Notes: generated by a model not told the origin, from the letters alone. A DNA stretch of 63,371 nucleotides, filler included, from Lenisia limosa (GCA_001655205.1; 14 parts of 14 records of this genome joined end to end with filler, not necessarily neighbours in it); one strand, 5' to 3'; shown: positions 548 through 22,279, counted from the first letter of the whole stretch. Numbers and translations: made by a program.

Positions 548-3500
548 GCGAAGCTATCGTCGCAATGGGCCAAATTAGACATTCCCTCTGAGGGGGAAAC
601 AGCCAGATCCAAGCTGAAGGACAAGTGGGAGGGGGGGGGGGNNNNNNNNNNNNNNNNNNNNNNNNNNNNNNNNNNNNNNNNNNNNNNNNNNNNNNNNNTA
701 TATCTAATGTTTATCTAGATATATATCTGTATATTATATGATATAGATTAACTATTCACCACACCCTCCCCCAGAGATGATTTTGGGCTATTTTTTTTTT
801 CTTTTATTCTCCCAATTTTACCCCCGTCCCCTAGGGTGCGGAAAGGCGTGCCGGATATTTCACGTCGGAAAGCGTACCAGGCCATGACGGGAGGTCTGGA
901 ACTCTATCTCAAGGAACCGCTGAACTACCGTGTGGCCTTGGAGACAGCTTTTAAGCCGGATGGTGGGGGGTATACTTGTTATTAGGGCTTCTCTACGCTC
1001 CCAAAAATGCTCAATTACTCGATAAATCCTCGAAAATTATCGATATTTTACTGGTCTTTTTCGGACCGTAGGGAAGCCCTACTGGTTATACTTTGTTTTT
1101 GGTTCGGAAGGAGGAGGAGGGTTATGTACAATGTTTATACACTTAAAGTCTGTCTGCACAGAGTTGTAAAGCAAATGATTGGGTGAATGAATATTATACT
1201 ATAATCCAATATCTCTTAAAAGCGTGATGGTGTTGACGGTTTCAGCCAGATAACCTTATTTTTTATGGCAATCGAATGCAGCGTCATCCCCATTTCCAGT
1301 CAACTTACCCCTATAGAAGGTGAATGCACTGAAGTCCCCGATACCTTTAATACCCCTCTACCCGACAACAATGGACCCAAAGTTTCCGAATCAGTGAGAG
1401 GTTATTGTTATTACTTCTTCACTTAAACAAAAGGCGGAATTCTTGATAAACCCTCGAGAAATCCTCGATAAACGCTTGATAAATCCTAGATAAATCCTCG
1501 ATAAATATCTGAGATTTTGCTGGTCTTTCGGATTAAAGGCCTAATTCTATAATATCGATATCGATGTTTATATCATATTATAATACTCTAATCCAATATC
1601 TCTTCTAGGCTAAGTGTGAAGGTGTAGACGATTTAGGCTTGATACTACATGTTACCCCCCCCCCCCTCNNNNNNNNNNNNNNNNNNNNNNNNNNNNNNNN
1701 NNNNNNNNNNNNNNNNNNNNNNNNNNNNNNNNNNNTTTTCCGATTTTACGAGTGATGGGATGCGGTGCTGCAGAAGCGACTGGTCTTTTTGTTGTTATCA
1801 ACCCTCGTGTGATGTCAGCCAACAGAGTTGATTTTGGGCTGGTGTTGTTTAATAAATTTAACTCCACCCTCCCGCAGGTTCTCTCATTCCTCACCCCGAC
1901 TGGACGAAGGTGCCTGCATCGTCTGTTGACCGTTTTCGAGAAGACCAACAATTGCCTGTCAAAATCCGCCTCAGTCCCGCATTTGGGTGTGCAGGGAGAG
2001 AGACACACACACAGAGAGAGAAAGAGAGAGAGACAGAGACACACACACAGAGAGAGAGAGAGAGATTTCTGGGGGCTGATCAAATGTCCCAGTGTTCTCC
2101 CCTATTATTAACTATTTTTGTCTCAGCTATTATCTCAATATTATTAATATTTCCAGCTGCCCTCCTCCTCTGCTATCTCAACGAGGTTGAGACCTACTAC
2201 ACGCTCTCATCCATCGCTGAGATGTCTACCGTTGACGGCTGGTATCTTCAGCTTGGTGATGAAAGTAACAGAGTGAGGGGGGCTTTCATTGTTATTTATG
2301 TGTGTGTATGTTGGGTGATATGTGTTGAGAGAGGGTTTTTTCATAAGTCTTCCATTTTAAAGGCTGGCTCGGGCTTGTTTTTGTGTTTGTGTTTTTGTCA
2401 AGTTTTAGCGTTGGTTGTTGCTCATGTTTGTATTGCTTGTTTTTTGTTTGTTTGGAGTTTCAGATTATTCGGTTCGNNNNNNNNNNNNNNNNNNNNNNNN
2501 NNNNNNNNNNNNNNNNNNNNNNNNNNNNNNNNNNNNNNNNNNNNNNNNNNNNNNNNNNNNNNNNNNNNNNNNNNNNNNNNNNNNNNNNNNNNNNNNNNNN
2601 NNNNNNNNNNNNNNNNNNNNAAACTTCCTGACGTCTTTAAACGTAGGAGGAATATGCCTGTTAAATATGCCTGGGTGTCTTGGTTGGATAGGGCTTCCCT
2701 ACAGTCCGAGAAAGACCATTTAAATATCGATATTTATCGAGGATTTATCGAGAGATTCGGTCTTTTTTGGGACCATAGGGAAGCGCTAGTAATATTCCTG
2801 TTAAATATGCCTGTTTATTTTGGTTGGAACGTAAGCGTAATACATATACAGTATATAGCAATGAGAAATAAAAACCAAGGTTGCATGGGTAATAGTATTT
2901 AATCATATCAAGATATTGGTAAAAATGCTTGAATATCCTCATCCATCCAGACCTCACTTTTTTTTTTTTTTCATTTCACCCCCCCCCCCCCCCCCNNNNN
3001 NNNNNNNNNNNNNNNNNNNNNNNNNNNNNNNNNNNNNNNNNNNNNNNNNNNNNNNNNNNNNNNNNNNNNNNNNNNNNNNNNNNNNNNNNNNNNNNNNNNN
3101 NNNNNNNNNNNNNNNNNNNNNNNNNNNNNNNNNNNNNNNNNNNNNNNNNNNNNNNNNNNNNNNNNNNNNNNNNNNNNNNNNNNNNNNNNNNNNNNNNTAG
3201 TTTTCCTGGAAAAATACAGTGAAGTTTTTTTTCAATTTTCCGTTTTACTCCCCCTCCCCAGACCTGTCATCATTGGGAGTGGAAGCCTCGGATTTCGGCA
3301 GTTCCTGGTTTGACGTTCTCTTCCTCCACACCTTCACACCAACCGTTGGCGGGACGGGGGAGGGGTATTGTAATTAGGGCTTCACTTTGGTATAAATCAA
3401 GACTGTTCACCGATAGATCCTCGAAAGCTATCGATATTTTGCCGGTCTTTTCACGGAAGTGAAGCCCTAATAATAATCATCATCATTACAGTAATCTTCA

Positions 3501-3844
3501 CCATCATTATATTAATGCGGGTCTGTGGGGGGTTAGGGCTTCACTTCTGTCCGAGCAATCGAGAAATTCAGTCCTTTTTCGAAACGAAGTGAGGTTCTTG
3601 GTATCATATTATTTTACTGCAAAGGGGGAGGGGGCTATTATCTATCAATAATGTGAATTATGTGGGAGGTGGAGGAGTAATAACTGACATGTGACCGACA
3701 TTTTTTCACCCCCCCCCCTCCTTTTATTTTTTTGCAAATAAAAAACGATGTTATGTGATCTCACGATCCAGGAAGCCTTCAGAGTGCTTGACACCTATCT
3801 CTCCGAGGGAACAAAGGTGCTCTATCGTGTTTCCCTCGCTCTTT
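548..3844 (+). CDS. TBC-domain Rab GAP (TBC1D24-like), multi-exon, partial at both ends
   Basis: Hand-spliced exons give VRKGVPDISRRKAYQAMTGG (about 836-960), VLSFLTPTGRRCLHRLL (1878-), AALLLCYLNEVETYYTL (2158-) and EAFRVLDTYLSEGTKVLYRVSLAL (3771-3844). These match the TBC hallmarks RKGIP..LR..W and R.WD.FL.EG.KVLYRVAL. Boundaries are GT-AG. Confidence 0.8.
983..1081. mobile_element. Family A MITE copy
   Basis: tagggcttctctacg ... cgtagggaagcccta, with a TA duplication. Confidence 0.8.
1749..1877 (+). repeat. Family D dispersed repeat (about 140 bp) ending in a C-run at a 3' splice site
   Basis: gagtgatgggatgcggtgctgcagaagcgactgg...tgtcagccaacagagttgattttggg...aaatttaactccaccctcccgcAG; about 14 full or partial copies. 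Confidence 0.8.
1996..2064. repeat. Compound (GA)n/(CA)n microsatellite
   Basis: Directly visible; intronic in the TBC gene. Confidence 0.9.
3375..3469. mobile_element. Family A MITE copy
   Basis: atTA-gggcttcact ... aagtgaagccc-TAat. Confidence 0.85.
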
Positions 3845-4055: not shown

Positions 4056-7000
4056 CCCTCCTACCACTATATCCGTGACTGCGGATTCCTCATCAACATC
4101 ATCAGGTTCTTCTTCCAGCGCGCAGCACTGGGGGTAAAGGGAAGATTTATGAAACAAAGAAGAACCCAAAATCAACTGTTGGGGGTGAAATGGAAAATTT
4201 ATCTCTGAGTGGGGGTCAAATTCTCCAAAAATCTCAAACAAGATGTTCAAATTATCCTATTCTTCAAAAAATAGAAACAAGCACATAAGACCTTGAACAC
4301 ACCCCTCCAGAACTAATATCAACCATCTAAAATATGAAAAGATGTCTTACCCCTAGGCTTCACTATGGTTCGAAAAAAAGACTAAATTGCTCGATGAATC
4401 CTCGAAAACTATCGATATTTTCTCAAACCAAGTTATCCTCCCTCCCCCTCTTACACTGCATAAGCATCCCGAGATCATGGCAAAGTCACCGGACCGCAGC
4501 TGGACCTTGACCAGTTCAGAGGGCCGACGGTTGCATTTGACACAAGGCTGGGGGGGGGGGGGNNNNNNNNNNNNNNNNNNNNNNNNNNNNNNNNNNNNNN
4601 NNNNNNNNNNNNNNNNNNNNNNNNNNNNNNNNNNNNNNNNNNNNNNNNNNNNNNNNNNNNNNNNNNNNNNNNNNNNNNNNNNNNNNNNNNNNNNNNNNNN
4701 NNNNNNNNNNNNNNNNNNNNNNNNNNNNNNNNNNNNNNNNNNNNNNNNNNNNNNNNNNNNNNNNNNNNNNNNNNNNNNNNNNNNNNNNNNNNNNNNNNNN
4801 NNNNNNNNNNNNNNNNNNNNNNNNNNNNNNNNNNNNNNNNNNNNNTCCGCCCCTCCCCCCCACATCAACTTTAACCCCATCTCTCACCCACAATCCAAAT
4901 AATTTGAAAATAAACAGCTTGAATAGCTACCAATTTTAGGGTCTCAGTTCAGTTCACAATCCCATTAGTAGCTCCCCCCACATCCGCTTTGGCAGTATCA
5001 TCGGTCACACCATGGCCATGCAGTGAGGTTTCAAAAAGCATGTCGTAATTCTGCTTTTCCTTCATTACGTCCGAAGTGAGGTTGAGGAAAACAGATTGGA
5101 GGGAAGGTGGGGACATACCCTATATGGTAACACAACTGTTTTGAATTGCCTTAAATGATAACGAAACGGATTTGACCTGCCTTATATGGTAATAAAACAG
5201 ATTTAACTTACCTTATGTATATCATAGCTATGTGGTAATAAAACAGTTGACAAGCATTGTTATGAAAACAATGGAATACATTTGCCCTATTTTGCGCATA
5301 CTTTAGGCATTCAATCCCCCCNNNNNNNNNNNNNNNNNNNNNNNNNNNNNNNNNNNNNNNNNNNNNNNNNNNNNNNNNNNNNNNNNNNNNNNNNNNNNNN
5401 NNNNNNNNNNNNNNNNNNNNNNNNNNNNNNNNNNNNNNNNNNNNNNNNNNGATTGAGGCCTTGTCGAGAGTCATAACTACGTTTTCTGGGGAGGGAACAG
5501 ATGTAAATTGGAAATTAATGAATCAAAAATAAGCTGAAAATAACCTATCAGCTGACAACACCGAAGGGTTCAGAACAACAAAACAAACAAAGACCAGGCC
5601 GGTCGCTTCGGCAGTACTGCATCCCATGGTGAAATTGAAGAATATTGGGGATAGGGATATGATACGAACCATAAGCAATAGCAACGCAATCAACCCCTAC
5701 CGGCAGTGTCAAAGTTGATGGTGGCAACTGGAAGCATCTAAAGGTTATTAGGAGAGCCTCACTTCAGTTCAAAAAAAAAAGTGTCATTAGGGCTTCAGTT
5801 ATGGTATCCCTGTTTCCCTAGATTTATAATGTAGCTATATGATATAAATACATTATGTAATTATTTCTCTTCTTTGTTTTTAAACAATTCCACTCACCCT
5901 ATCAATAACACGAAGCACGACGTCCTTTCTAGCCGGGTCCACTCCCAATGTCACGTTGTACTTGCCACCTGTTGGGGAGAGTAAATACGATGAAATGGAG
6001 GGGTGTGTGTTTATGTGAGTGTGTGGATCGAGAGAAAGAAAGTGGTCCAAAGAGGGAAAAAAGTGGGGCCAAATAGACGCACCACATACACAAACAAACA
6101 CATAATTTTGGTACCGTACAATTAATTACTGCAATTAATTTCAATTATCTTTATTTTGGAAAAATAACTATCAATAATTCAAACTCCACCCCGCGCGCAC
6201 CGTGGACGGATTTGAGCTCCAGAGGTGTTCCATGGCACCGCAGTCGCTGTCTCTNNNNNNNNNNNNNNNNNNNNNNNNNNNNNNNNNNNNNNNNNNNNNN
6301 NNNNNNNNNNNNNNNNNNNNNNNNNNNNNNNNNNNNNNNNNNNNGGGTTGATAACAAACAACCAAACAAAGCCCAGGCCAGTTGCTTCATTAGCACCGCT
6401 TGTTCAGAATATCTCCATTAACTGCGGTCAGATACAACAAACAGTCATCATAATCATAACTAGGGCTTCACTTTTTTAGTTCGAAAAAGACTTGAAAAAT
6501 ATTGGTAGTTTAGGATTTATCGATAAACACTATTTAACAAGTGAAGCTCTGATTATATCCCCTGAACTCCCCCAACATGCATCATTGCAACATTGTCGGC
6601 AAGGTTGTCAACTTCCTCCAAGATGTGCGTGGAGTAGAGAATCTGAAGAGTTTTGAAAATCAGTGCTTCCTACTGGACCGATGTTCAGGGAAGTGCCCAT
6701 GTTTCTTACATATAATACCCTCCATAACAACAACCCATATTGTTTAATTGTTAATAGTACCACCAGCTATTACCATTCTTAGCCCCCCTTACGGCGGCAC
6801 CCGCATCACGTCGGCGCAAGATGGCGTTGGCAACGACCTCGCGTACTTTCGGGTCAAGACCACTGTGAAGGTTAGAGTTTTGGAACGGGATAAAGTTCTG
6901 TTGGACTCCGTGTAAGTGTTTTAAGGAAATTAAGTCACAAAATTTGACAATAATGGAAGTTTTATGCCGGACTAGCAGAGAGTTCAAGGGATAAAGAACC

Positions 7001-7542: not shown

Positions 7543-9308
7543 CACCTCCACGACCTGCTACCAAGTCCTTTGAAAGGGTCACAGCCGCTGAATCGGTATG
7601 CGTCAGGGCCCAGGACCCCCCACTGCAAACTGATGTGACCGTTGCAATCACCTAAACGGGATTTATTCCACCAGAAAAAATTTGACTTGCTCTTGCCAAA
7701 CATAATTCAAGTCAATTATATTTCAAAACAAGGTTTCAAATGGGAATATAATATAGAGATTTGGCTAATATGAGAGAGATTTGTAATCACGAAATCTATT
7801 AAAATGCGATTAATACGACAGGATAACTGGTGTGATAAAATATATAATTAAAAAAAATGTTGTGTAATAATATATCTAAAAAAGCGTTTAGATGTACATA
7901 TGATATAGTATTTATACATATAATGAAAAACAAGGTTGTATCTGGCCGAATCCGCCAAACCATCCGGCTTATAAGAAATATTGGATTATAATATAATATA
8001 AATTCACCCAATTATTTGCCTTACAACTCTGATGCGTGCCTCCCATATCATAAAAGCACCTACAGTGAACTCTATTAATCAAATGCCTTGTAAAATATCG
8101 ATGTTTATCGATGATTTATCGAGAATTCAGTCTATTTTTGGAACAGAAGCTCTTGGAAGGAAATAGTACAAATATTAATGTAACGTAAGCAAACCTGTAA
8201 CGTATTATTAGACAGCTCAGCGACAGTATCTCCAAAGCGATTGCGGGCTACAGCACGGATTTTGATAGTTTTCCCTGCGGTAACTTCTGAAAGTGGCTCA
8301 GAGGTCTGGAGAAGTTACCATGTTCCAAAGAGAAGTAAATAGGGTTTTGTCTGATAACAGATAAACATAAAAGCATACAATTGGTTTTGGAAATATAAAG
8401 CAACCAAAATTAAGACAAGTATTAAGTAAAAGCAGCATCTTCAAAAGAAAAAAAATACAATATACTATACATAATATGTATTGTATATTAACAAGTCCTC
8501 ACATCATATGCGTTAACCCATATCAAGAGCGATTTTGATCATATAACCGATTTTCAAGTCGAAATCACACCACTCACAAGAGCATCCACAATCGAGAACG
8601 TGGTTGAAGACGGAGACAATCCGGCCATAAACATGATGTAGTCGGGAGTAGTGGACTGGATGGGTTAGCAAAGAATCCTTCCTAGAGCTTCGGTTCCAAA
8701 AATAGAATCTCGATAAATCCTCAAAGGCGTTTGATTAGTAGAATTTCACTTTAGGTTCCAAATGACTGACAAAATATCGATATTGAAGATTTATCGAGAA
8801 TTCAGTCTTGTTTTTGGAACCGAAAGTGAAGCCCTAATCATTCCCCTCCTCAAGGGCTTCAATTGGGTTCGTAAAAAGACTAAAGTTTTCAATAAATCCT
8901 CAAAAACTATCGCTATATTACCGGGTTATTTTAAGTTGAAATGAAGCCCCCCATTCTTTGCTCACAATCCCCACTCTTCTAAAGGATGGCAGAGACTATC
9001 TAATAGTGTTTATAAATTCTAAACTCCGTGCAAATGATACAACATTGCCCCAGCGCTCCATGCAATATAACCATGCAATATAAAAATTGTGGTTTATTAT
9101 TATCAGAAAAATAATTCCTACCCCCCACCCCGCGTGTTGTCAGCCAACAGAGTTGATTTTGGGTTTTTTTGTTTGTTTCATAAATTTTCAATTTAACTCC
9201 TCCCTCCCCCGCACATTTGTATACCACCCCCTCAATGGTACGGGGTTAATTGTGCCAAGGCAATCAGCACCATAAGGGCAGTCTTTACACAGTCCAAGTG
9301 AACCATAT
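7543..9308 (-). CDS. Fragment of a large Cys-rich/Ig-like surface protein
   Basis: Exon YGSLGLCKDCPYGADCLGTINPVPLRGWYTN (CPxGAxC...GW motif) and exon VTAGKTIKIRAVARNRFGDT (filamin/Ig-like). Product is inferred only. Confidence 0.4.
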
Positions 9309-12131: not shown

Positions 12132-12510
12132 AAATTTAACATAATTCAGTACTGTTGGAGTGTTGCGCTATTCTAAGAGACTACTAGATACTCAATAAAA
12201 ATGTTCAAATTGTGTTTGGGATTTACAATTTTAATCCTGAACCCACTTCAAATTTATACCCCCCACCCCACGCACCACCCAGGATAACGGTTATCCCATT
12301 CTCCGCAGTGAACACTTCGGNNNNNNNNNNNNNNNNNNNNNNNNNNNNNNNNNNNNNNNNNNNNTTAATTAATTAANNNNNNNNNNNNNNNNNNNNNNNN
12401 NNNNNNNNNNNNNNNNNNNNACTTTACTTGGGGAGGGGGGGGGATCAAGGTTTTTTGAAAGATAATATTATTTTCTTTCATTGATGAGCCCCCCAATTTA
12501 CCGTTTTTAG

Positions 12511-15500
12511 TGAAGATCCGCGAATAGCTCTCTTGGAGGATTATAGCGAAGAAAGTAACGAGTGAGAGGAAGGATTTTAGTCAACAATATTCAATCTCTT
12601 TCTGCAGTGCCAAATGATTTGTACATTTGCGCTTTATTACAAGTAAATTGAAATTCAAATTAAAAATAGTAATCAAAATTACTATTACAGGAGGAATATA
12701 ATTATTACCCCGAAATCTCATTCTTTAGTAACAGCGAATGGGAGTCTCACTCTTCTGAAGGTAGGAGCAAGGGTGCTGCTGGTCAAACCTTTTTGTCCTT
12801 TGTTTCTTATGAACTACGAGTCTATTTTGGTATATTATTATGTTTTTTGTCGTAATCCCCATTCTGTGTTATCAATATTGAGCCGTCAACTGGATCATTT
12901 ATCAATAGTGTATTGTTTCAATCCACTTTGAATTGGCTTGTTGATGATCGCAAAGTTTGTCATCACTGACTCTCAATTTAAAATTGTCGAACATGAAATG
13001 ACCACTCAGAAAGCGAAGATGAAAACGAGGAGGAAGAAAAAGAGGGTGACCTTTTCGCGTCTCCAAAGATCCAGCGAATCGAGCAACAGGTGAAAGAAAC
13101 CAGAGCCATCATGCATGAGAACATNNNNNNNNNNNNNNNNNNNNNNNNNNNNNNNNNNNNNNNNNNNNNNNNNNNNNNNNNNNNNNNNNNNNNNNNNNNN
13201 NNNNNNNNNNNNNNNNATGACTTTTAAGAACGGGGGATAACAAAACAATGAATGCATTAAATAATATAACCTGTGTCCATATTCATTTGCTGTATTATAT
13301 GATATACACTGACCGCGATAAGTCCTGACACGATTTACTCCAGATAAAGCGCATTATCCGTGTCAGGATTTTTCGTGGTCAGTATATATTTCATTTGCTG
13401 TATTATATATCATATGTAATACATATATACAACATTTCATATGCCACTGAGTAATTTAGTTAGGGGGGGGGGGGTGATGGGATACTGAGGGGGACCACAT
13501 TTGACCAATCTAGGTGATGGAAAGAGGCGAAGCGTTAGATATGTTGGATGAGAAGGCCATCTGTCTGGAAAAGTGGGTGACTGGCTGGCTTTTGATTGTT
13601 GTGGTATTTATTATTGTTCACATTTTTGTTAGCAAGGTTCTCATAGTTATTCCTATCACTTTTGTTTTCAATTTGGCTTCTACATATAACTAATACATTT
13701 GTCACATCATCATACATGCTTGTATGATCCAGTTTTAAGCAGGCGATCAATCTTACCATTTAGTTCAGCTCAGCAGTTTAACATGAAAGCTGCCTCAATG
13801 AAAAAGAAAGGTGAGCTAACGGTCGGTTGCCTTTTAGCAAAGGTTCATTTAGGGCCAAAAAATAGACGATCTTGACATTTTACTGCTATTTTTGTTATGG
13901 ATTTTAATTTGTTGCAGGAGGAGGGTTCTCTCGCCAAAGGAAGTTCAAACCTGAACCACCTATGAGTATGTCTTTGATTTAAAAACAGTATTTTGAAGGG
14001 TTATCCACGTTATTATTAACATGGGAACTAGTAGAGAAACACAGCTATGTAGGGTATATATAGCAATAAGAAATAAAAAACAAGGTTGTATCTGGCCGAA
14101 GCCTTCCACACCATCACGCTAATAAGAGATATTGGATTAGAGTATAATATTAATTCACCCAATCATTTGTCTTGCAACTCTGTGTACACAGCTTTCTGCG
14201 TGCTCTCCAGCATAGGTATTCTGTGACATATTGGGATAGTTCTTCATTTCAATCCACGGTGTCTTGAATCGGAATATCACACTGCCAGAAGAAGCCAACG
14301 CTTATGACGACAGTGATGCAAAACCCTCGTTACCCGATGACAGCAAGGTGGGAGGGGTATGGCTTCTAAAATTCATAAAATTTGTCAAATATTTTTATTG
14401 CTATATAATACCAGAATACGTATCATATGCAAAATAGAAAATGTTTATCAATTGGTACATCAAGGAGAAAATAAATAAATATTGCGTTTTCTGTGCAATA
14501 TGGATATCATACGGATTTTCACCCAATTCCTTGTTAAATGACCCTCAGCCATATCAGGAGCCGGTTCGTACCGGCAAAATGAAGGACGAAGGTTTGTGGT
14601 GAGAGTAGACACTGGAAGTTAATAGAGGGTTTTGTGTTATGTATTCCTAACCTTCATCTCACAATGCTCCCCGTATTGAGGTCTGCATATATTTACAGAC
14701 TTGAACACTTTTTTCGCGTCAGCTATTCGTTCTCTCATGGATAACAATTCTAGCGCCTTCAAAGCCCCAAAGGAAGCGAAAGTCAAAAAAACATGTGGAT
14801 AGCGATGATGATGATCGTGTGAGGGCCGAACTGACGGAATCGACTTTCGCTAACACCGGCCTGGGCTTTGTTTGTTTTGTTGTTGTCAACCCATGTGTGT
14901 TGTCAGCCAACANNNNNNNNNNNNNNNNNNNNNNNNNNNNNNNNNNNNNNNNNNNNNNNNNNNNNNNNNNNNNNNNNNNNNNNNNNNNNNNNNNNNNNNN
15001 NNNNNNNNTTGGAACCGAAAGTGCAGCTCTAGTTAGTAGCATCAATTAACACCGACAGTCGATCTCCAGGCCCTGGCTGACGCTTCGCATTGCAATGTCG
15101 GCAAGAGCGGACCAATTGAGGTGGGTCCGCTTTGGGTTTGACTGTTTTTGTGTCCGCTTATGTGAAGGATAGAAGACCATTCAGCTAAGATTACTGCGAA
15201 TCTCTCTCTTGGTTAATCTCAAATTTGAAACCATGTATTATCATCAGATATAACATCATATACAGAATTGGGGAAGTCTTTTCATTTTTCTGGTTATTTT
15301 CTTTGACCTAATGATATCACCATGACTTCCCAATTACTTTTACCACTCAGTACATTCCCACCGTCTTCGATAACTACTCTGCGAATGTTATTGTCAACGG
15401 CTGTCCCATGTCGGCATCGTACAACGAACTCAGTAGCCAGGTAGGCACATGGTGAGGGCAGATCGAATGATATTGCGAGGCAAAAGGATTCATGCCGCCG

Positions 15501-17575
15501 GGATGAACTGCCTCTACCGTTTTTTTAGGTTGCTACTTGTCTTCCCTTTGTGTAGACAATATCTGTTACTAGGAGTCCTTTGGAATATGTGTTGAATCCC
15601 AGTATGGGGTTTTAAGGTGTGTTGATGCCTTGTATATCCTATACAGAGTCTAGTAGAAGATGTGTATTGCAGATTAGTGGTAAGTCTTGACCATCAACCT
15701 CTGCTGCATTATCGCTTCTGGTCTAACTCGTGACAGTATATGGAAACCAGGCTCCTCCCCATCATTGTCAGCTGCAACCAAGTCAACATGCTCCTCTTCA
15801 ACCCCTGGGTATGTCAGAATCCTCTTTTGCAAAAGAATAATCTTAATTGGCGCTTCACTTTCTCTTTTGCAAATGATGTAATATCATTGGTACCGTATGG
15901 ATGGAACGTCTTCGGTATAATATGATATCTGATATAATATATTGATAAATAGTATGCATTTCATACTATAATATCATATCATATGATGTGTATTTAGAGA
16001 ATGTCATGTGTCTAATTCCCGAAAGTAAAGCTCCAGTTTTGACCCTTTACAGGTCCGGGAGTCCTTTGAGTTCCTCGACACGTTTATTGCGGCATNNNNN
16101 NNNNNNNNNNNNNNNNNNNNNNNNNNNNNNNNNNNNNNNNNNNNNNNNNNNNNNNNNNNNNNNNNNNNNNNNNNNNNNNNNNNNNNNNNNNNNGGTTGAA
16201 TAATAATTCTTCTATTTATACCTTAGGAGCAAGTTAGCTGCATAAAAGATGAAGCAGTCAAGGCTGACCTGTTTAGCGTGAATGTCTTCCGCAATGTCAC
16301 CCCAGCCTGTGAGGATATCCCAAAAACGGAGTTCCCTCTTGGAGTCGTTGTTGCAACCCAGGTATACCGTGAGGGCGGATTGATAGGTGGCGTCTTTTGA
16401 GATCAATATGGGATGTGTTGATTATAATATGATATGTATTTCTATATTTCTCATTATTTTGTTCAATAATGATTCTACTCAGCTCACTAATGTGTTTGTT
16501 TATCATGTCTTTCAATTTGGGTAACAAAAGACTGATCTCCTAAGATTGATCGCCATCCTTCCACTCGGCTTGTGACTGAAGAAGAGGTATGTAAGGGAAG
16601 GACGGAGCATTAACATATTAATCGTAGTACTGATTGACCCATTTGTATAGTTTATATTTACCCTTTACTTCAATAACGCACCAATCCAGGGCAGGATCTG
16701 GGCCAAAGCGCATGGGATGCCCTACGTCGAGATCTCAACCTTTGACGGTATAAACACCCCAGTACCCTTCGACATCATGCACCAAATTGCCTTCAAGCAC
16801 TTAGGGTGGGGGCTAGATCAGAATCATAATTTGAGTTTTTGAAGTTGAAGGCAGATTGGCCTTATTATGAAAATTTAGTGGCCTAAGATGATGATATTGC
16901 TTGTAATATGGAAATAGATTTTTCCTTGACGCTTCCAGCCCCAAGAAGCTGAAGAAGCTGAAGAAAGGACAGTTCCATTCCCACGCTTCTGGCTTCTTCA
17001 GCGTGCGATTTGGCGTCGGTGGAATGGACGGAAGCGGCAAGACGCATCTCATAATGAGCTACACTTGTGGTCCAATGCCAGCCTATGGTTTGGAAGGGCT
17101 TCATAGCAAATGGGCTCCAATTGTCTTGGTGCTAGAGGAGATAGGTACTCCGAGGTAGTCTTAAAAGCCACTTTCCGAGTGACATTTTTTAACTTTTTTA
17201 AATGCTGTTTTGTCAACTTCTGTCAGAAGATACTACCAAGCATCATCCCATTCATTCGTAATTTGTGTTTTTGCGATCCCATTCATTCGTAATTTGTGTT
17301 TTTGCGTCGAACTATTTCAGAATCCTTTTAAAATTTAGGATGATTAAAATTTTGTGAAAGGGGGAGGGGCTACATGGATTTGATTTGTAAGTCATTTTTC
17401 TTCTAACCTGTCAGATATGAAGCCCGAGATCCCGGATCCTGGAGTGCTCTGGAAGGCTCCAAAGGACCCTCATGGCAACCCGCCCCCTGGTACCATCCAG
17501 GAGATTGGCAAAGGAAAGTCCTTCGGCTACCCCTGTAGGAGGACTGATTACGACAAGGAGTTGCTTGATGAATAA
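12511..17575 (+). CDS. R-SNARE coiled coil (no TM helix) fused to degenerate Rho/Ras-like GTPase sequence; 5' partial
   Basis: SNARE exons: KIQRIEQQVKETRAIMHENI / VMERGEALDMLDEKAICLE / NSAQQFNMKAASMKKK. GTPase exons: YIPTVFDNYSANVIVNG (15351-15440), MLLFNPW/VRESFEFL, GVVVATQ/IDRHPSTRLVTEEE/GRIWAKAHGMPYVEIS, and VRFGVGGMDGSGKTHLIMSYT (16939-17087). Splice phases are consistent wherever there is no N gap. Confidence 0.65.
14055..14182 (+). repeat. Family B dispersed repeat (about 130 bp, no TIRs), best copy
   Basis: tagcaataagaaataaaaaacaaggttgtatctggccgaagcc...aagagatattggattagagtataatattaattcacccaatcatttg..caactctg. Copies at about 1158(-), 1585(-), 3945, 7921, 10505(-), 25915(-), 28965 and 41355(-). 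Confidence 0.85.
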
Positions 17576-17682
17576 AGTACACCACTCTCCAACTTGTACA
17601 AACTCTTTACACCACCACACACAATATTAATTAGCGGAGATGATGCAATAGTTTTGTCTTTCTTCTTACTTGCCCTTTACAG

Positions 17683-18374
17683 TCCGATTGATGCCGCCCT
17701 ACGAAATGCTTTACGCCGTTACCGAATCTTGCCAAAATTCCGATGGCATTGAGTGGGAAAGGGGGGAACCATTCCGACAAGAGAAGCACGAAAACTTTAT
17801 ATATAGTGTCTGCTCATAAAATTCTGAAATATTTCTTCTTAGTTGCGTGTATGTGACCTGGTTTAGAGAGGGTATCAAAAGAAGGTTCCTCAGTGCTGCA
17901 TTCGAGGAGAATGACCCCGAGCTGCCCTTGTCTAAAGTGGACCTGGAGTGAGAGGAAGGCCTGCTGTTTATGCTGTTAGTACAAAGTATATTAACTGGGG
18001 TAGAAATTGCTTTTGGTGTGTACCATTATGCTCAAATTTTGATGCTTCTTCTTTTTGGTATTGCTTTATTATAATATTACATTATCCTGATAACCGTGTA
18101 GGAGTGCTTTCATCGAGACCGACAGCGACTCACTTATGTGCTTGGATGATAGCAACGCGGCTCTCATACCCACACCCAAGAGTAGGCAACAGGGGGTATA
18201 TGGCTTATGAGTAAAAGGAGAGGGGGTCATTGTTGACAAATCCCTTGAAATGACTATTCCCTTCACAACGCAGACACCACCCCCAGAGTGTCTGTTCGTC
18301 TTACAGCAGGCCGCGCGCTGATTCTTTCGTCGTCAGATTCTTGTCGTGGCTCAATTTCAATTGATTGGAGCGAG
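17683..18374 (+). CDS. Further exons, possibly continuing the preceding gene as a second degenerate GTPase domain
   Basis: Exons FRLMPPYEMLYAVTESCQNSDGI / EGIKRRFLSAAFEENDPELPLSKVDL / SAFIETDSDS. They are in phase if a donor near 17534 is used instead of the stop at 17575. SKVD and FIET weakly resemble G4 and G5. Confidence 0.35.
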
Positions 18375-18706
18375 GTTGGTGGTGTTGATCTTTACTTATG
18401 TCATTATTAATATTATTCTTTCTTTGACTTTTTTATGAGAGACATTAAATGAGTACAAGTTAAGGTTTGCTTTTCCCTTTTTTATGTCACTCTTTTCTCC
18501 ATTTGTTATCCTTTTTTATATTCTGAGTTTTAATTTTTTCGTTCATTGGTTTTATATAACGAACAATCTCAACAATTATCCATTCGTATTGACCTTGTTT
18601 CTATTTTTCCATCAGTATGTTATTATATATCATAAAAAAAATATATTAAAAACAAAAAAAAAACTGACTGCACATTCTCTTGAGGTTCAAAGAGCTTGGT
18701 AGAATC

Positions 18707-20510
18707 ATTTTATACGCCCGTCTTCGTATCATATACCAAGAGCTCACTGGAAACATTGTATATCGAGGGACTTAAAAATTGATGTGACACCCATAATAGT
18801 TTTCCCTCAATAATAAGAGACAGAGCAACGCGTACAAAAATGAAAACAATGTATTGAAGATGCAGTAAAATGAACAAGCTAGTTCACCTGAGCTGCTCGT
18901 CTGGAACACACTGTACAATTTTGGCCGCAAAGTTGGTGTGTTCACAGGAACATTTTCCTAAGAAGATATAAAACAGAAAAAACAAAATCTATTCAAAAAG
19001 GCAATTCTAAAATGCTTGGAATGTGCCATTGACATTACCAATGAGGCTGACAGGAGATGTCTCAATGTCATCAGTCCACGAGGGATAACATTTGGCACAC
19101 ATGTGCACTGCTGTTCTGTTTACGAGGAAATGGTATGTAACCACAGCTATCCTAAGAATTAGCTTGGTTCCATTAAGCAAGTTTTACCTTAGAAACAGAG
19201 TTCCCTTTAGCCGATGTTAGTCTTTGGATAAGAGTGCCAGGGCGTACTTAGCAAGGCCCTAGCAAAGGTGAGCTGAGATACATCGTCACACCTAAGAAGA
19301 AAATAACAAACGAGTTCAGTCCTCAAATTTGGTGTATCTTGAAATATCAAAAGGAGAGAGCTATATTGTATATCATAAAACCACCCAGCTACTTACGTTA
19401 AACAGCAAGTGAAGGCAAATCTGCTTACAACAAATTATTTAGAACAACTTTCAAGCCTGAAGGGCTTTTGATCAGCCCGGTCCTTCAGTATCAGCCGCGC
19501 TCTTGATACCGTCACTGCCGCATCTTATTCTACCAAAGCAGACTTCCCACTTGTTACGATTCTGAATAATGTGTATCCTCTCTTGACTACGGGGTTACGC
19601 TTTCCTGCCAAGAAGTGCATGGACTAAAATTTAACTGTTTGTATCGAGAGGTCAGTTTCCTCAACAATTTTGCGTTATAATAGAATCGGCAGTTCGCTAA
19701 AATATAAAATATTAAAATAATGCCACAAGGCATTAAACGGTTGTTCTGCAGGCGACATATACAGAGAGTGTTTTTGCTCCATTGGGAGACACGAGGTCTA
19801 CAACCTTGCCTCCTAAGGCGCCTTTCTTGGACTTTGAAGCATCTCTGACACAGAATAAGACCTAAAAAAAATTACATTAACAAGAATGATGCTAATTAAA
19901 ATTCACAATGTATCTCTGGATAAGCATCTGCGACATGGATGATGTTGGTACATCTGCCCTGACACTACAAACATACGGACACTTGGCCTCAACCAACCAG
20001 ATACCTTTGGGCGAGAGAACCAAGAGGTCCGGAGACGCCCCGATCCGTGACTGGGTGTCACCAACAAAGCTTCTCACAGTTAACAAGCCGACTGTCAGCA
20101 CCAGGAATGTCTTCGTAGTGTGGATCATCCTGTCGAATTATTCAAAATAAATCCCCAAACAAAAACGTGACAAATGAGGGAAATAATATCTCGGTGACTC
20201 ATCTTGCAGCGGAAATCAAATCCGCTCTTTTTTGAATCGAAGAAAGCTCTTGTTATGCAATTTACTTCTTGATTTTCCTTTGTCGTTTTTCTCTCTCAAC
20301 TATCGTGAATGTTGTCTTTGTATTTCTCCATGTTCACCAATAAACGATCTGTAAAACAAAGAGATGGATAACTTTACGTAACTAACACCATGCTATCTAG
20401 ATACATACATCTACATTTAATGTAGAATGACTTATCCCTTCACGTTTCGGACCGTCTGACTCATCCAGGAAGGACAACTCAGCTGCACTCCGACAACCGC
20501 CTCAATAGAC
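18707..20510 (-). CDS. YqaJ/lambda-exonuclease-like PD-(D/E)xK nuclease, multi-exon; boundaries approximate
   Basis: Exon 19920-20110 encodes RIGASPDLLVLSPKGIWLVEAKCPY...SQMLIQRY, matching the GASPDG...EIKCPY...QxQ motif of YqaJ-type nucleases. Flanking exons are not recognisable. Confidence 0.55.
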
Positions 20511-22279
20511 CTTTTCACTGGGTGTTGGGAGTACGGTCGAAGATGCGGAGTGGTAGGATATTGTCAAATACTGACGGTTTTGTTTTCATAAGAGTAATCA
20601 ATTTTAAAGCGGGGAATAACCACAAAAGGTTTGGAGTTGTACTATTTACTTCAGAAATCTTTCTCACCTCTTCTTTTTGTATTCTTAACATGGGCGAAGG
20701 TCTGCGGCCGGCTTCAGCCAACGTCTTCCCTCATTTTGAGTTTATCTTCTCAAGGTTGGGTTCATATTCCCTGAAAAGGGGGGTTATATAGCATGATGAA
20801 CTGTGCTATGATAAGTAATGCTCAGCAGTGATGATATAATATATACTATACAACATACAAAAAGCGAGGATCACATCAGGAATATTTATTCTAACCATGG
20901 TTGAGGATGTTTTGTTTCACCCCCCCCCCCCCNNNNNNNNNNNNNNNNNNNNNNNNNNNNNNNNNNNNNNNNNNNNNNNNNNNNNNNNNNNNNNNNNNCT
21001 TGGTCCAGATTGGGTCATGCACAATGCTCTATCTCACTCTCCACGCCGCTGTGATCATGAAGATAGCTAAAATCCGTGGGGCTGAGAGTGACCCTAATGT
21101 TGTGTTTTTACTCAACATCGAAATGCATGGCTTTTTAATCCGAAGTAAATCCCTGTTTCTCAGTGAAGAGCCTGGTTATGTTCCGTGTTTTGGGCGTCCT
21201 ACGCTCGCAAAAAATACGGAATTGTTCGATAAATATCGTAATTTTAAGACGGTCTTTTTTGGGACCATAGCAAGGGCTATGATAAATCTCCATTTTCGAT
21301 TCCAAAGGCGGATTCTCATTATTACCGATAATGTTCATGGTTGTATTGACCATACTGAGGGAGTGTGTTCGTCCTGAATACTTCCCATTAACTCCTTAGG
21401 TCGACCAAGGCTTTGCCTGCATAAGGTTCCAGAAGGCTTGGATGCTAAAGGTTGGTCGCATAGAATAGATCACAGGTCACTTTTATCAACATGTCACGAT
21501 TTTTTTTTTTCTTTTCTGAAGTATGGCATATCATATATTCTCATTTAGTATTTCGAATCTTAATGGATTTTAGATCGAGAATCCCTTATGAAAGAGTTTA
21601 GGATACCCTACTGTAAGAGGAGTGCTCACTTTTGTTGCAAAATACCATTCTAATGGGTAATACATAGGGCTTCACTTCGGTTCCAATAATACCAGTAAAA
21701 TATCGATAGTTTACGAGGATTTTTCGAGAAATTCAGTCTTTTTTTGAATCGAAATGAAGCCGAAAGCATACATACTATGATATATACGCGGGAAATTCAC
21801 CACTTTTTGGGGATGGAAAGCCAAAAGTAGCATGTTGTCATGGTGTAGGAGATAAATAGCTACAATATCTTGCCAGTATTTTCAGACTGAATTATGTATT
21901 TATTCACTAAACATTTAGCGGTTTACGGAGTTGAGAGTCACAGCTGCCGCCTGCTTAGGGATGCATTACGTAGGTCACGGACTGTTTAATTATGCCCCCC
22001 CTCCCCCAGACCTATCCGATACTCAATTATTAAGTCAACAGAGTTGATTCAGTTTCATATTATCTCNNNNNNNNNNNNNNNNNNNNNNNNNNNNNNNNNN
22101 NNNNNNNNNNTTAATTAATTAANNNNNNNNNNNNNNNNNNNNNNNNNNNNNNNNNNNNNNNNNNNNTTTTTAACAGTATGAAAACCCACTCACAATATAC
22201 CCACACTCCCCTCCCCCCCACGTTTTTTTTTCCTTTTTACAACCAAAAGTAAAGTATTTAAATTCAATCTACCACCCCC

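Follow-up and report, generated by a model that had tools for sequence, protein, structure and literature searches.

In the YlqF/YqeH/YjeQ (YRG) GTPases, which are TRAFAC ribosome-assembly proteins unrelated to Rho, the G motifs stand in the order G4-G5-G1-G2-G3. PseudoGTPases and atypical Rho proteins (p190RhoGAP pG1/pG2, RhoBTB, Rnd, RhoH) are of G-domain ancestry and keep the canonical topology. To our knowledge, none of the latter carries its sole P-loop on the C-terminal side of helix 5, and just one permuted family is known in the Ras superfamily. The subject of this report is a candidate Rac-derived gene on the plus strand of Lenisia limosa DNA (GCA_001655205.1), at positions 14579 to 17575 of a window of 63,371 nucleotides (the whole stretch analysed, 14 parts of 14 records joined end to end with filler), in which the only intact P-loop appears to lie past the end of a degenerate GTPase domain. 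In the Ras-superfamily proteins named cpRAS the G motifs run G3-G4-G5-G1-G2, and helix 5 leads straight into strand 1 and helix 1; their break falls between strands 2 and 3, they belong to the Ras family (TIE motif), all of their G motifs are intact, and they occur beside VWA or COG2373-like regions, with conservation that extends from Naegleria as far as metazoans (Elias and Novotny 2008, PMC2430557).

The connection from helix 5 to strand 1 in cpRAS is a natural precedent for the present locus, which differs from cpRAS in that G2 and strand 2 are N-terminal, the break falls between helix 1 and switch I, and the locus appears to be Rho-derived (Rho-type G2), degenerate and an orphan; no Pfam domain, VWA or COG2373-like regions included, was found in the flanking open reading frames (ORFs). 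The YRG GTPases offer the likeness of a permuted motif order in a single G domain, but here G2 precedes G4. With the pseudoGTPases and atypical Rho proteins the locus shares the loss of catalytic or nucleotide-binding motifs and, presumably, a scaffold or effector-binding role. The likeness to Rac and Cdc42 comprises switch I and strand 2 (YIPTVFDNYSANV, 20 of 22 residues identical to Rac1), the helix 1 signature GKTxLIxSYT, a Cdc42-type TQxD G4 and a polybasic stretch like the Rac tail; the differences are that the intact G1 follows helix 5 instead of being N-terminal, DxxG is lost, the Rho insert and the CAAX box are lacking, an N-terminal extension of basic/acidic character and a tail rich in P and G are present, and most of the core has diverged past detection. 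An earlier note on this DNA had proposed a circularly permuted small GTPase with the order G2-G3-G4-G5-G1 and had given the YlqF/YqeH order as background, which is incomplete in that cpRAS was omitted. The order itself holds in part: G2 (exon E2), a Ras-like G5 (E7) and an intact G1 (E8) are recognizable, but the G3 position reads ELSSQ and G4 exists at motif level as TQ/ID.

We give about an even chance to the reading that the locus is a duplicated, fused and degenerate Rho derivative, probably non-switching, encoded by a real lineage-restricted gene. A Rac/Cdc42-type GTPase gene would have passed through tandem duplication, in-frame fusion and complementary decay, leaving about one and a third Rac-type copies and the only intact nucleotide-binding loop past the domain end. 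Unit 1 would have kept switch I and strand 2 nearly unchanged and the Ras-like strand 6/G5/helix 5 end, while its own strand 1, P-loop and helix 1 were reduced to a VGKS vestige, DxxG became ExxS, and the Rho insert and CAAX box are missing. Unit 2 would consist of the polybasic linker, strand 1, the intact Walker A motif and helix 1, with a P/G-rich tail of unrelated sequence behind it. Most likely the product is a pseudoGTPase-like, non-switching Rho derivative that may still present a Rac-type effector face. The candidate exons, with the optional exon E4 and the ORF that follows E8, are these:

14579-14591, plus strand: X4, predicted first coding exon (ATG AAG GAC GAA G; donor G/GT; phase 1)
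14754-14818, plus strand: X5, proposed exon for the basic/acidic N-terminal extension PSKPQRKRKSKKHVDSDDDDR (donor CGT/GTGAGG; codon score null-like)
15070-15120, plus strand: E1, putative vestigial P-loop exon (ALADASHCNVGKSGPIE; first glycine of the Walker motif gone, no strand 1, no helix 1)
15351-15440, plus strand: E2, switch I (G2, T35 retained) with strands 2 and 3, equivalent to Rac 32-61, DTAGQ replaced by ELSSQ
15737-15808, plus strand: E3, coding exon placed best without gaps on the colinear Rac 62-85 (xRLLP for DRLRP), at a score within noise
16053-16095, plus strand: E4, optional exon cut by a run of N (VRESFEFLDTFIAA...; phase 2)
16227-16361, plus strand: E5, coding exon that closes with ...FPLGVVVATQ (putatively strand 5 plus the TQ half of G4)
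16545-16586, plus strand: E6, IDRHPSTRLVTEEE, completing TQ/ID (Cdc42-type G4, at motif level only)
16690-16805, plus strand: E7, GRIWAKAHGMPYVEISTFDG...FDIMHQIAFKHL(G), Ras-like end of helix 4, strand 6, G5 (STF for SAx) and helix 5
16939-17087, plus strand: E8, polybasic linker PKKLKKLKK, strand 1, Walker A motif GGMDGSGKT, helix 1 HLIMSYT, up to the equivalent of Y32
17088-17155, plus strand: ORF past E8, GLEGLHSKWAPIVLVLEEIGTPR and then a stop
17415-17575, plus strand: E9, candidate terminal exon for a P/G-rich tail that runs to ...KELLDE, with TAA at 17573-17575

The codon-position score cited for these exons was trained on the neighbouring SNARE-like exons and E2 only, with 364 ORFs of the same contig as the null (99th percentile, 0.055 bits/nucleotide). 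A second record of this DNA was available for comparison: the 52-residue E9 ORF has one exact record, on the ENA metagenome-assembly contig ERZ3820729 NODE_424 (25,195 nucleotides, coverage 25), of which the corresponding stretch, L121, is free of N and agrees at 100% identity with each of the five window blocks.

The similarity to Rac is strongest in E2. This exon (YIPTVFDNYSANVIVNG) matches Rac1 residues 32-53 among PDB sequences with E=5e-6 (phmmer), is found among 485 ORFs with E=5e-9 by a local Rac hidden Markov model (HMM) built from 59 Rac ORFs of metagenome and metatranscriptome loci, and has a gapless profile score of 83.6 at Rac 32-61; by these alignments 15351-15440 is homologous to Rac. 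It carries the Rac/Cdc42 switch I/strand 2 signature Y(I/V)PTVFDNY, and 20 of 22 residues in its first part are identical to Rac, versus about 22% afterwards (residue counts from the alignments). The last third is not Rac-like, and G3 (DxxG(Q)) is absent from aligned positions 57-61, which read ELSSQ with D57 and G60 both lost. Because conservation within E2 is so uneven, uniform neutral decay is a poor fit. In some environmental Rac genes (metagenome loci L023, L001, L018 and L037) an intron directly follows Q61 or falls just ahead of GE/YIPTV, so an exon near Rac 32-61, like E2, is ordinary in the Rac genes of some lineages.

The intact P-loop is in E8, which aligns with Rac 8-31 with P=6e-5 (hhalign) and has a gapless profile score of 36.7, compared to 3.5 +/- 4.8 for shuffles (p<=0.0005); the local Rac HMM gives E=0.1 and Cdc42 3-53 gives E=1.4. 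By profile comparison E8 is a homologue of Rac 8-31, Rho-like beyond chance. Taken by itself, the Walker A pattern carries no significance, as a second G....GK[ST] occurs antisense by chance in the same 9.8 kb, and the Walker loop of E8 has Asp at the G12 position. An AlphaFold2 model of E8 alone is uninformative (predicted local distance difference test, pLDDT, 56.6). On the 3' side of E8, the ORF 17088-17155 is probably intron: extension into it lowers the Rac profile score, and its codon score is null-like. Similarity to switch I or strand 2 was not found after E8 by profile score. The intron between E8 and E9 contains a perfect 31-nucleotide tandem duplication (ATCCCATTCATTCGTAATTTGTGTTTTTGCG, two copies, 17245-17306).

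Between E2 and E8, the exon with recognizable GTPase character is E7, some 1.3 kb 3' of E2. Among its nearest clusters in the ESM Atlas, 28 of 30 matches are Ras PF00071 (0.94); its sole PDB match is Rab27A 136-180 (E=1.1), and hhalign places it colinear with Rac 152-177 (P=0.06). By these three weak but concordant results, E7 resembles the segment of a Ras-like domain that holds strand 6, G5 and helix 5. Its donor GG/GTGGGG at 16805/16806 is of phase 2, and the acceptor of E8 (...CTTCCAG/, E8 starting from 16939) is strong; GG plus C makes a glycine codon, and PKKLKKLKK...VRFGVGGMDGSGKTHLIMSYT is read in phase across the junction. The earlier description of a polybasic linker leading in phase into a beta1-P-loop-alpha1 unit is thus confirmed, both at this glycine and by the hhalign result for E8.

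The canonical N-terminal arrangement of G1 with strand 1 and helix 1 ahead of G2 was not found; upstream of G2 there is only SHCNVGKS plus five residues, in E1. The spacing from GK to Y32 in ...HCNVGKSGPIE is five residues versus fifteen in Rac, so E1 lacks helix 1, and it lacks a hydrophobic strand 1 as well, in agreement with the earlier observation that a truncated P-loop without beta-1 is all that precedes the switch I exon. The codon-position score of E1 is 0.046 bits/nucleotide (about the 98th percentile of null ORFs), and its comparison with the Rac profile gives p=0.6. A reading of E1 as a visible copy of E8 minus helix 1 was dropped (p=0.2 for the E1/E8 DNA alignment). The N-terminal P-loop exon that the earlier note had named as grounds for abandoning the permutation was not found: the upstream gap is filled by a repeat, and no other plus-strand Walker A motif or Rho-like fragment occurs in L121 and 8.9 kb further upstream (18.7 kb).

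Splicing of X4, X5, E1, E2, E3, E5, E6, E7, E8 and E9, checked exon by exon with phase arithmetic, gives a ten-exon GT-AG model of 894 nucleotides (divisible by 3), with ATG at 14579, the stop at 17573, 297 codons and no internal stops. Throughout the piece 12421-22066, GC-rich islands of 40-160 nucleotides (GC content 0.49-0.59) alternate with AT-rich spacers of 100-300 nucleotides (0.32-0.44) bordered by GT...AG in eukaryotic style, and the modelled exons and introns fall within these same two ranges; the piece does not resemble human DNA. Codon-position composition across E2-E8 is strongly periodic (chi-square p=2e-9, C3=0.42), and the scores of E3 (0.086 bits/nucleotide), E5 (0.074) and E7 (0.064) all exceed the 99th percentile. 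Since E3, E5 and E7 have kept this periodicity although their likeness to Rac is no longer recognizable, their divergence must have taken place as coding sequence. The score of E9 is 0.028 bits/nucleotide, at about the 95th percentile, and its stop codon, TAA at 17573-17575, overlaps an AATAAA that is the only one on the plus strand between 14480 and 20146. These features indicate an intron-bearing coding gene, and the exons would then share a common transcript. GTPase similarity was not found in E9, and no CAAX box was found at the C-terminus, where the model ends ...KELLDE with the polybasic stretch internal. Pfam searches with single exons found nothing at E<=10. An alternative chain of upstream exons from an ATG at 13783 was rejected, with poor codon scores and a position ahead of plus-strand AATAAA at 14072 and 14470-14479.

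Several observations weigh against a duplicated and fused Rho derivative encoded by a real gene. The exon boundaries were picked by eye, which makes phase consistency partly a selection effect, and the codon scores leave the 5' exons of the model uncertain. The codon score of E8 is neutral (-0.005 bits/nucleotide; the other two frames, -18 bits), and its donor at 17087 (TATG/GTTTGG, phase 1) is weak. As Rac homologues, E3, E5 and E6 are not separable from noise. No relative emerged from a full HMMER scan of 1.84 billion representative proteins with E8 or from word searches that used E8 and the E2 ORF. The locus is an orphan of a single organism and has no expression record.

The comparisons behind the verdict on the middle exons are as follows. 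A spliced profile alignment of Rac 62-177 on the DNA after E2 scores 35.5, within the 21-46 obtained elsewhere. Significant GTPase similarity was not found in E5, the start of which hhalign placed on helix 5 instead (P=0.045). The candidate G4 is the tetrapeptide TQ/ID alone, split over the E5/E6 junction, and the equivalents of D118 and T138 are 8 residues apart versus 19 in Rac, which leaves no space for the Rho insert if so weak an alignment is accepted. Chance matches to the Rac profile in dot plots reach noise scores of up to 36, and on this ground RHHAPN (E7, a different frame), KPCIIIRYNIIYRIGE (intron 1), GGSALGLTVFVSAY (past E1), and LYAVTE and FIETDS (further downstream) were dismissed. 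The HMMER matches of E8, bacterial FG-GAP-type repeats (GDxDGDGK), were rejected as spurious, and the one match of a word search with the upstream ORF is a repeat-derived ORF. In the collection searched, the ORFs of this organism are singletons.

Exon E4 is not part of the model. In L121 it either runs on through WR to GA/GTGGGG or enters a tract of 23 G, and its frame then reads ...FIAAWREWGGGGGGG and ends (WREW, seven glycine codons from the G run, stop). All GT donors in the E4 frame are of phase 2, whereas the E5 frame at the acceptor 16226/16227 requires phase 0, so E4 could be joined to E5 in frame solely via a second AG at 16236-16237; E3 can be spliced to E5 in frame directly.

The foremost alternative, though an unlikely one, is a genuine circular permutation, in which one G domain would be formed by E8 packing back into unit 1 via the polybasic linker of about 20 residues and would bind guanine nucleotide. 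Each element is present in one copy, with G1 intact only in E8 and T35, TQxD and S158 (G5) only in unit 1; unit 1, lacking strand 1 and helix 1, could not make a G domain unaided, although the exons of unit 1 have a coding appearance; no other P-loop exon lies on the plus strand in the 18.7 kb, nor was a second domain detected downstream; and cpRAS demonstrates that a Ras-like fold tolerates strand 1 directly after helix 5. Set against this are the loss of D57 and G60 from G3, the Asp at the G12 position of the Walker loop, the neutral codon score of E8, the lack of conservation of an orphan, and a structural model of E8 too poor to be meaningful as evidence of a fold. The prior is also very low, as one permuted family is known in the Ras superfamily. 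That the locus is a Rho-family permutation of the unprecedented order G2-(G3)-G4-G5-G1, with vestiges of its parents still visible (the VGKS stump and exon-like islands downstream), is improbable in our estimate. The route that the earlier note had envisaged, tandem duplication followed by trimming, is common to the permutation and to the degenerate Rho derivative that we prefer; the motif order fits it (vestigial G1, G2, lost G3, G4 motif, G5, intact G1), but most of the intervening exons are not demonstrably GTPase-derived.

If the C-terminal P-loop did complete unit 1, this would be the third permuted GTPase topology known and the first in the Rho family, broken at a site not seen before, where helix 1 would meet switch I, and with evolutionary intermediates still legible in the DNA, a direct illustration of the duplication-fusion-trimming route to permuted proteins. 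If it did not, the locus would be a Rac-derived gene that retains the effector-binding face while shedding the switch machinery, and its product could be a decoy or a scaffold. In either case the importance is conditional, as the locus is an orphan of one organism.

A further explanation, which we also consider improbable, is that the locus holds non-functional remains: two tandem Rac-derived copies decaying as unprocessed pseudogenes, with an open in-phase chain that is fortuitous or belongs to a recently dead gene. The deletion of helix 1 in E1 and the loss of DxxG would be expected of such remains, and the G23 tract that enters E4, the phase conflict between E4 and E5, the absence of homologues and transcripts from all collections searched, the ordinary lengths of plus-strand ORFs beside those of the minus strand, and the neutral or null codon scores of E8 and of the downstream islands E10 and E13 point in the same direction. 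A long-dead pseudogene is nevertheless unlikely because the exons E3, E5 and E7, diverged from Rac beyond recognition, retain strong codon periodicity and C3 bias; the contrast in GC content between exons and introns, the intactness of all splice sites and the sharply uneven conservation of E2 also argue against decay.

The earlier note had also allowed for a second domain continuing from E8 into 17683-18374, where GC-rich ORF islands carry on to about 18390:

17683-17816, plus strand: GC-rich ORF island E10, codon score null
17843-17944, plus strand: GC-rich ORF island E11, codon score at about the 95th percentile
18102-18195, plus strand: GC-rich ORF island E12, codon score at about the 95th percentile
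18274-18321, plus strand: GC-rich ORF island E13, codon score null

No GTPase signal was found in these islands by PDB search, hhalign, the ESM Atlas or spliced profile alignment of Rac 32-192 to the DNA 3' of E8 (26.4, equal to the null), which is weak evidence because the middle exons of unit 1 are equally undetectable. The donors of 17683-17816 are of phase 0 or 1 and 17843 requires phase 2, so an in-phase junction of the first two islands is not available; the last three do fit together in phase, and end ...PTPKSRQQG/TPPPECLFVLQQAAR and then a stop, an ending loosely like the hypervariable tail of a Rho protein whose CAAX box has been lost, a resemblance that has no statistical support. 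Two complete degenerate GTPase domains in tandem, an arrangement of the Miro or EngA type, the second made of E8 and these islands, are therefore very improbable: the in-phase end of the last three islands (...PPPECLFVLQQAAR, stop) and the codon scores of the middle two speak for them, but GTPase similarity appears by no method, the outer two islands score as null, the phases conflict at 17843, and E9 with its stop and AATAAA lies in between.

The runs of N in the window can be compared with the real bases in L121, where they correspond to 73, 106, 109 and 42 nucleotides in place of 92, 96, 98 and 66 N:

13125-13216: run of N, L121 707-779, holds G13
14913-15008: run of N, L121 2476-2581, holds C12
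16096-16193: run of N, L121 3669-3777, 109 nucleotides with a 23-G homopolymer and no exon inside
20933-20998: run of N, L121 8517-8558, begins directly after a C12 run

Homopolymers of G or C of 12-23 nucleotides are probably the cause of these runs. The run at 14913-15008 is part of an interspersed repeat, one copy of which (14855-14912 plus the gap fill) lies inside the intron just 5' of E1; other copies are at 21665-21758 (minus strand) and at 135-192 and 441-535 of L120, another small contig of the same assembly. The copies have 93% and 87% identity and are flanked by poly-C and poly-T tracts. A stretch 5' of the upstream gap that resembles Rac strand 4 (GLGFVCFVVVNP) was rejected as part of this repeat, of which the second contig carries a copy. 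Self-comparison of the DNA did not reveal a duplication at DNA level, and an Rfam scan of the piece 12421-22066 gave no match.

Gene calls recorded for L121 at 811-1017, 3022-3510, 5720-6286 and 8491-9108 pass through TGA codons and are artefacts on eukaryotic DNA, like those of prokaryote-style calling under an alternative code. Upstream of the candidate gene on the plus strand, 13012-13124 and 13514-13690 are two exons of an R-SNARE (VAMP4-like) gene, which encode an acidic stretch and then KIQRIEQQVKETRAIMHEN and, past the intron, VMERGEALDMLDEKA together with a hydrophobic anchor; Pfam gives a weak match to Synaptobrevin (E=0.011, under the cut-off), and the L121 gap fill, ...IDK/gt, preserves colinearity. 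Downstream on the minus strand, 19895-20137 is an ORF of 81 residues that carries a PD-(D/E)XK-like motif (...GIWLVEAKCPY...) and has a weak match to the Pfam NERD nuclease (E=0.046), which is possibly a transposon remnant.

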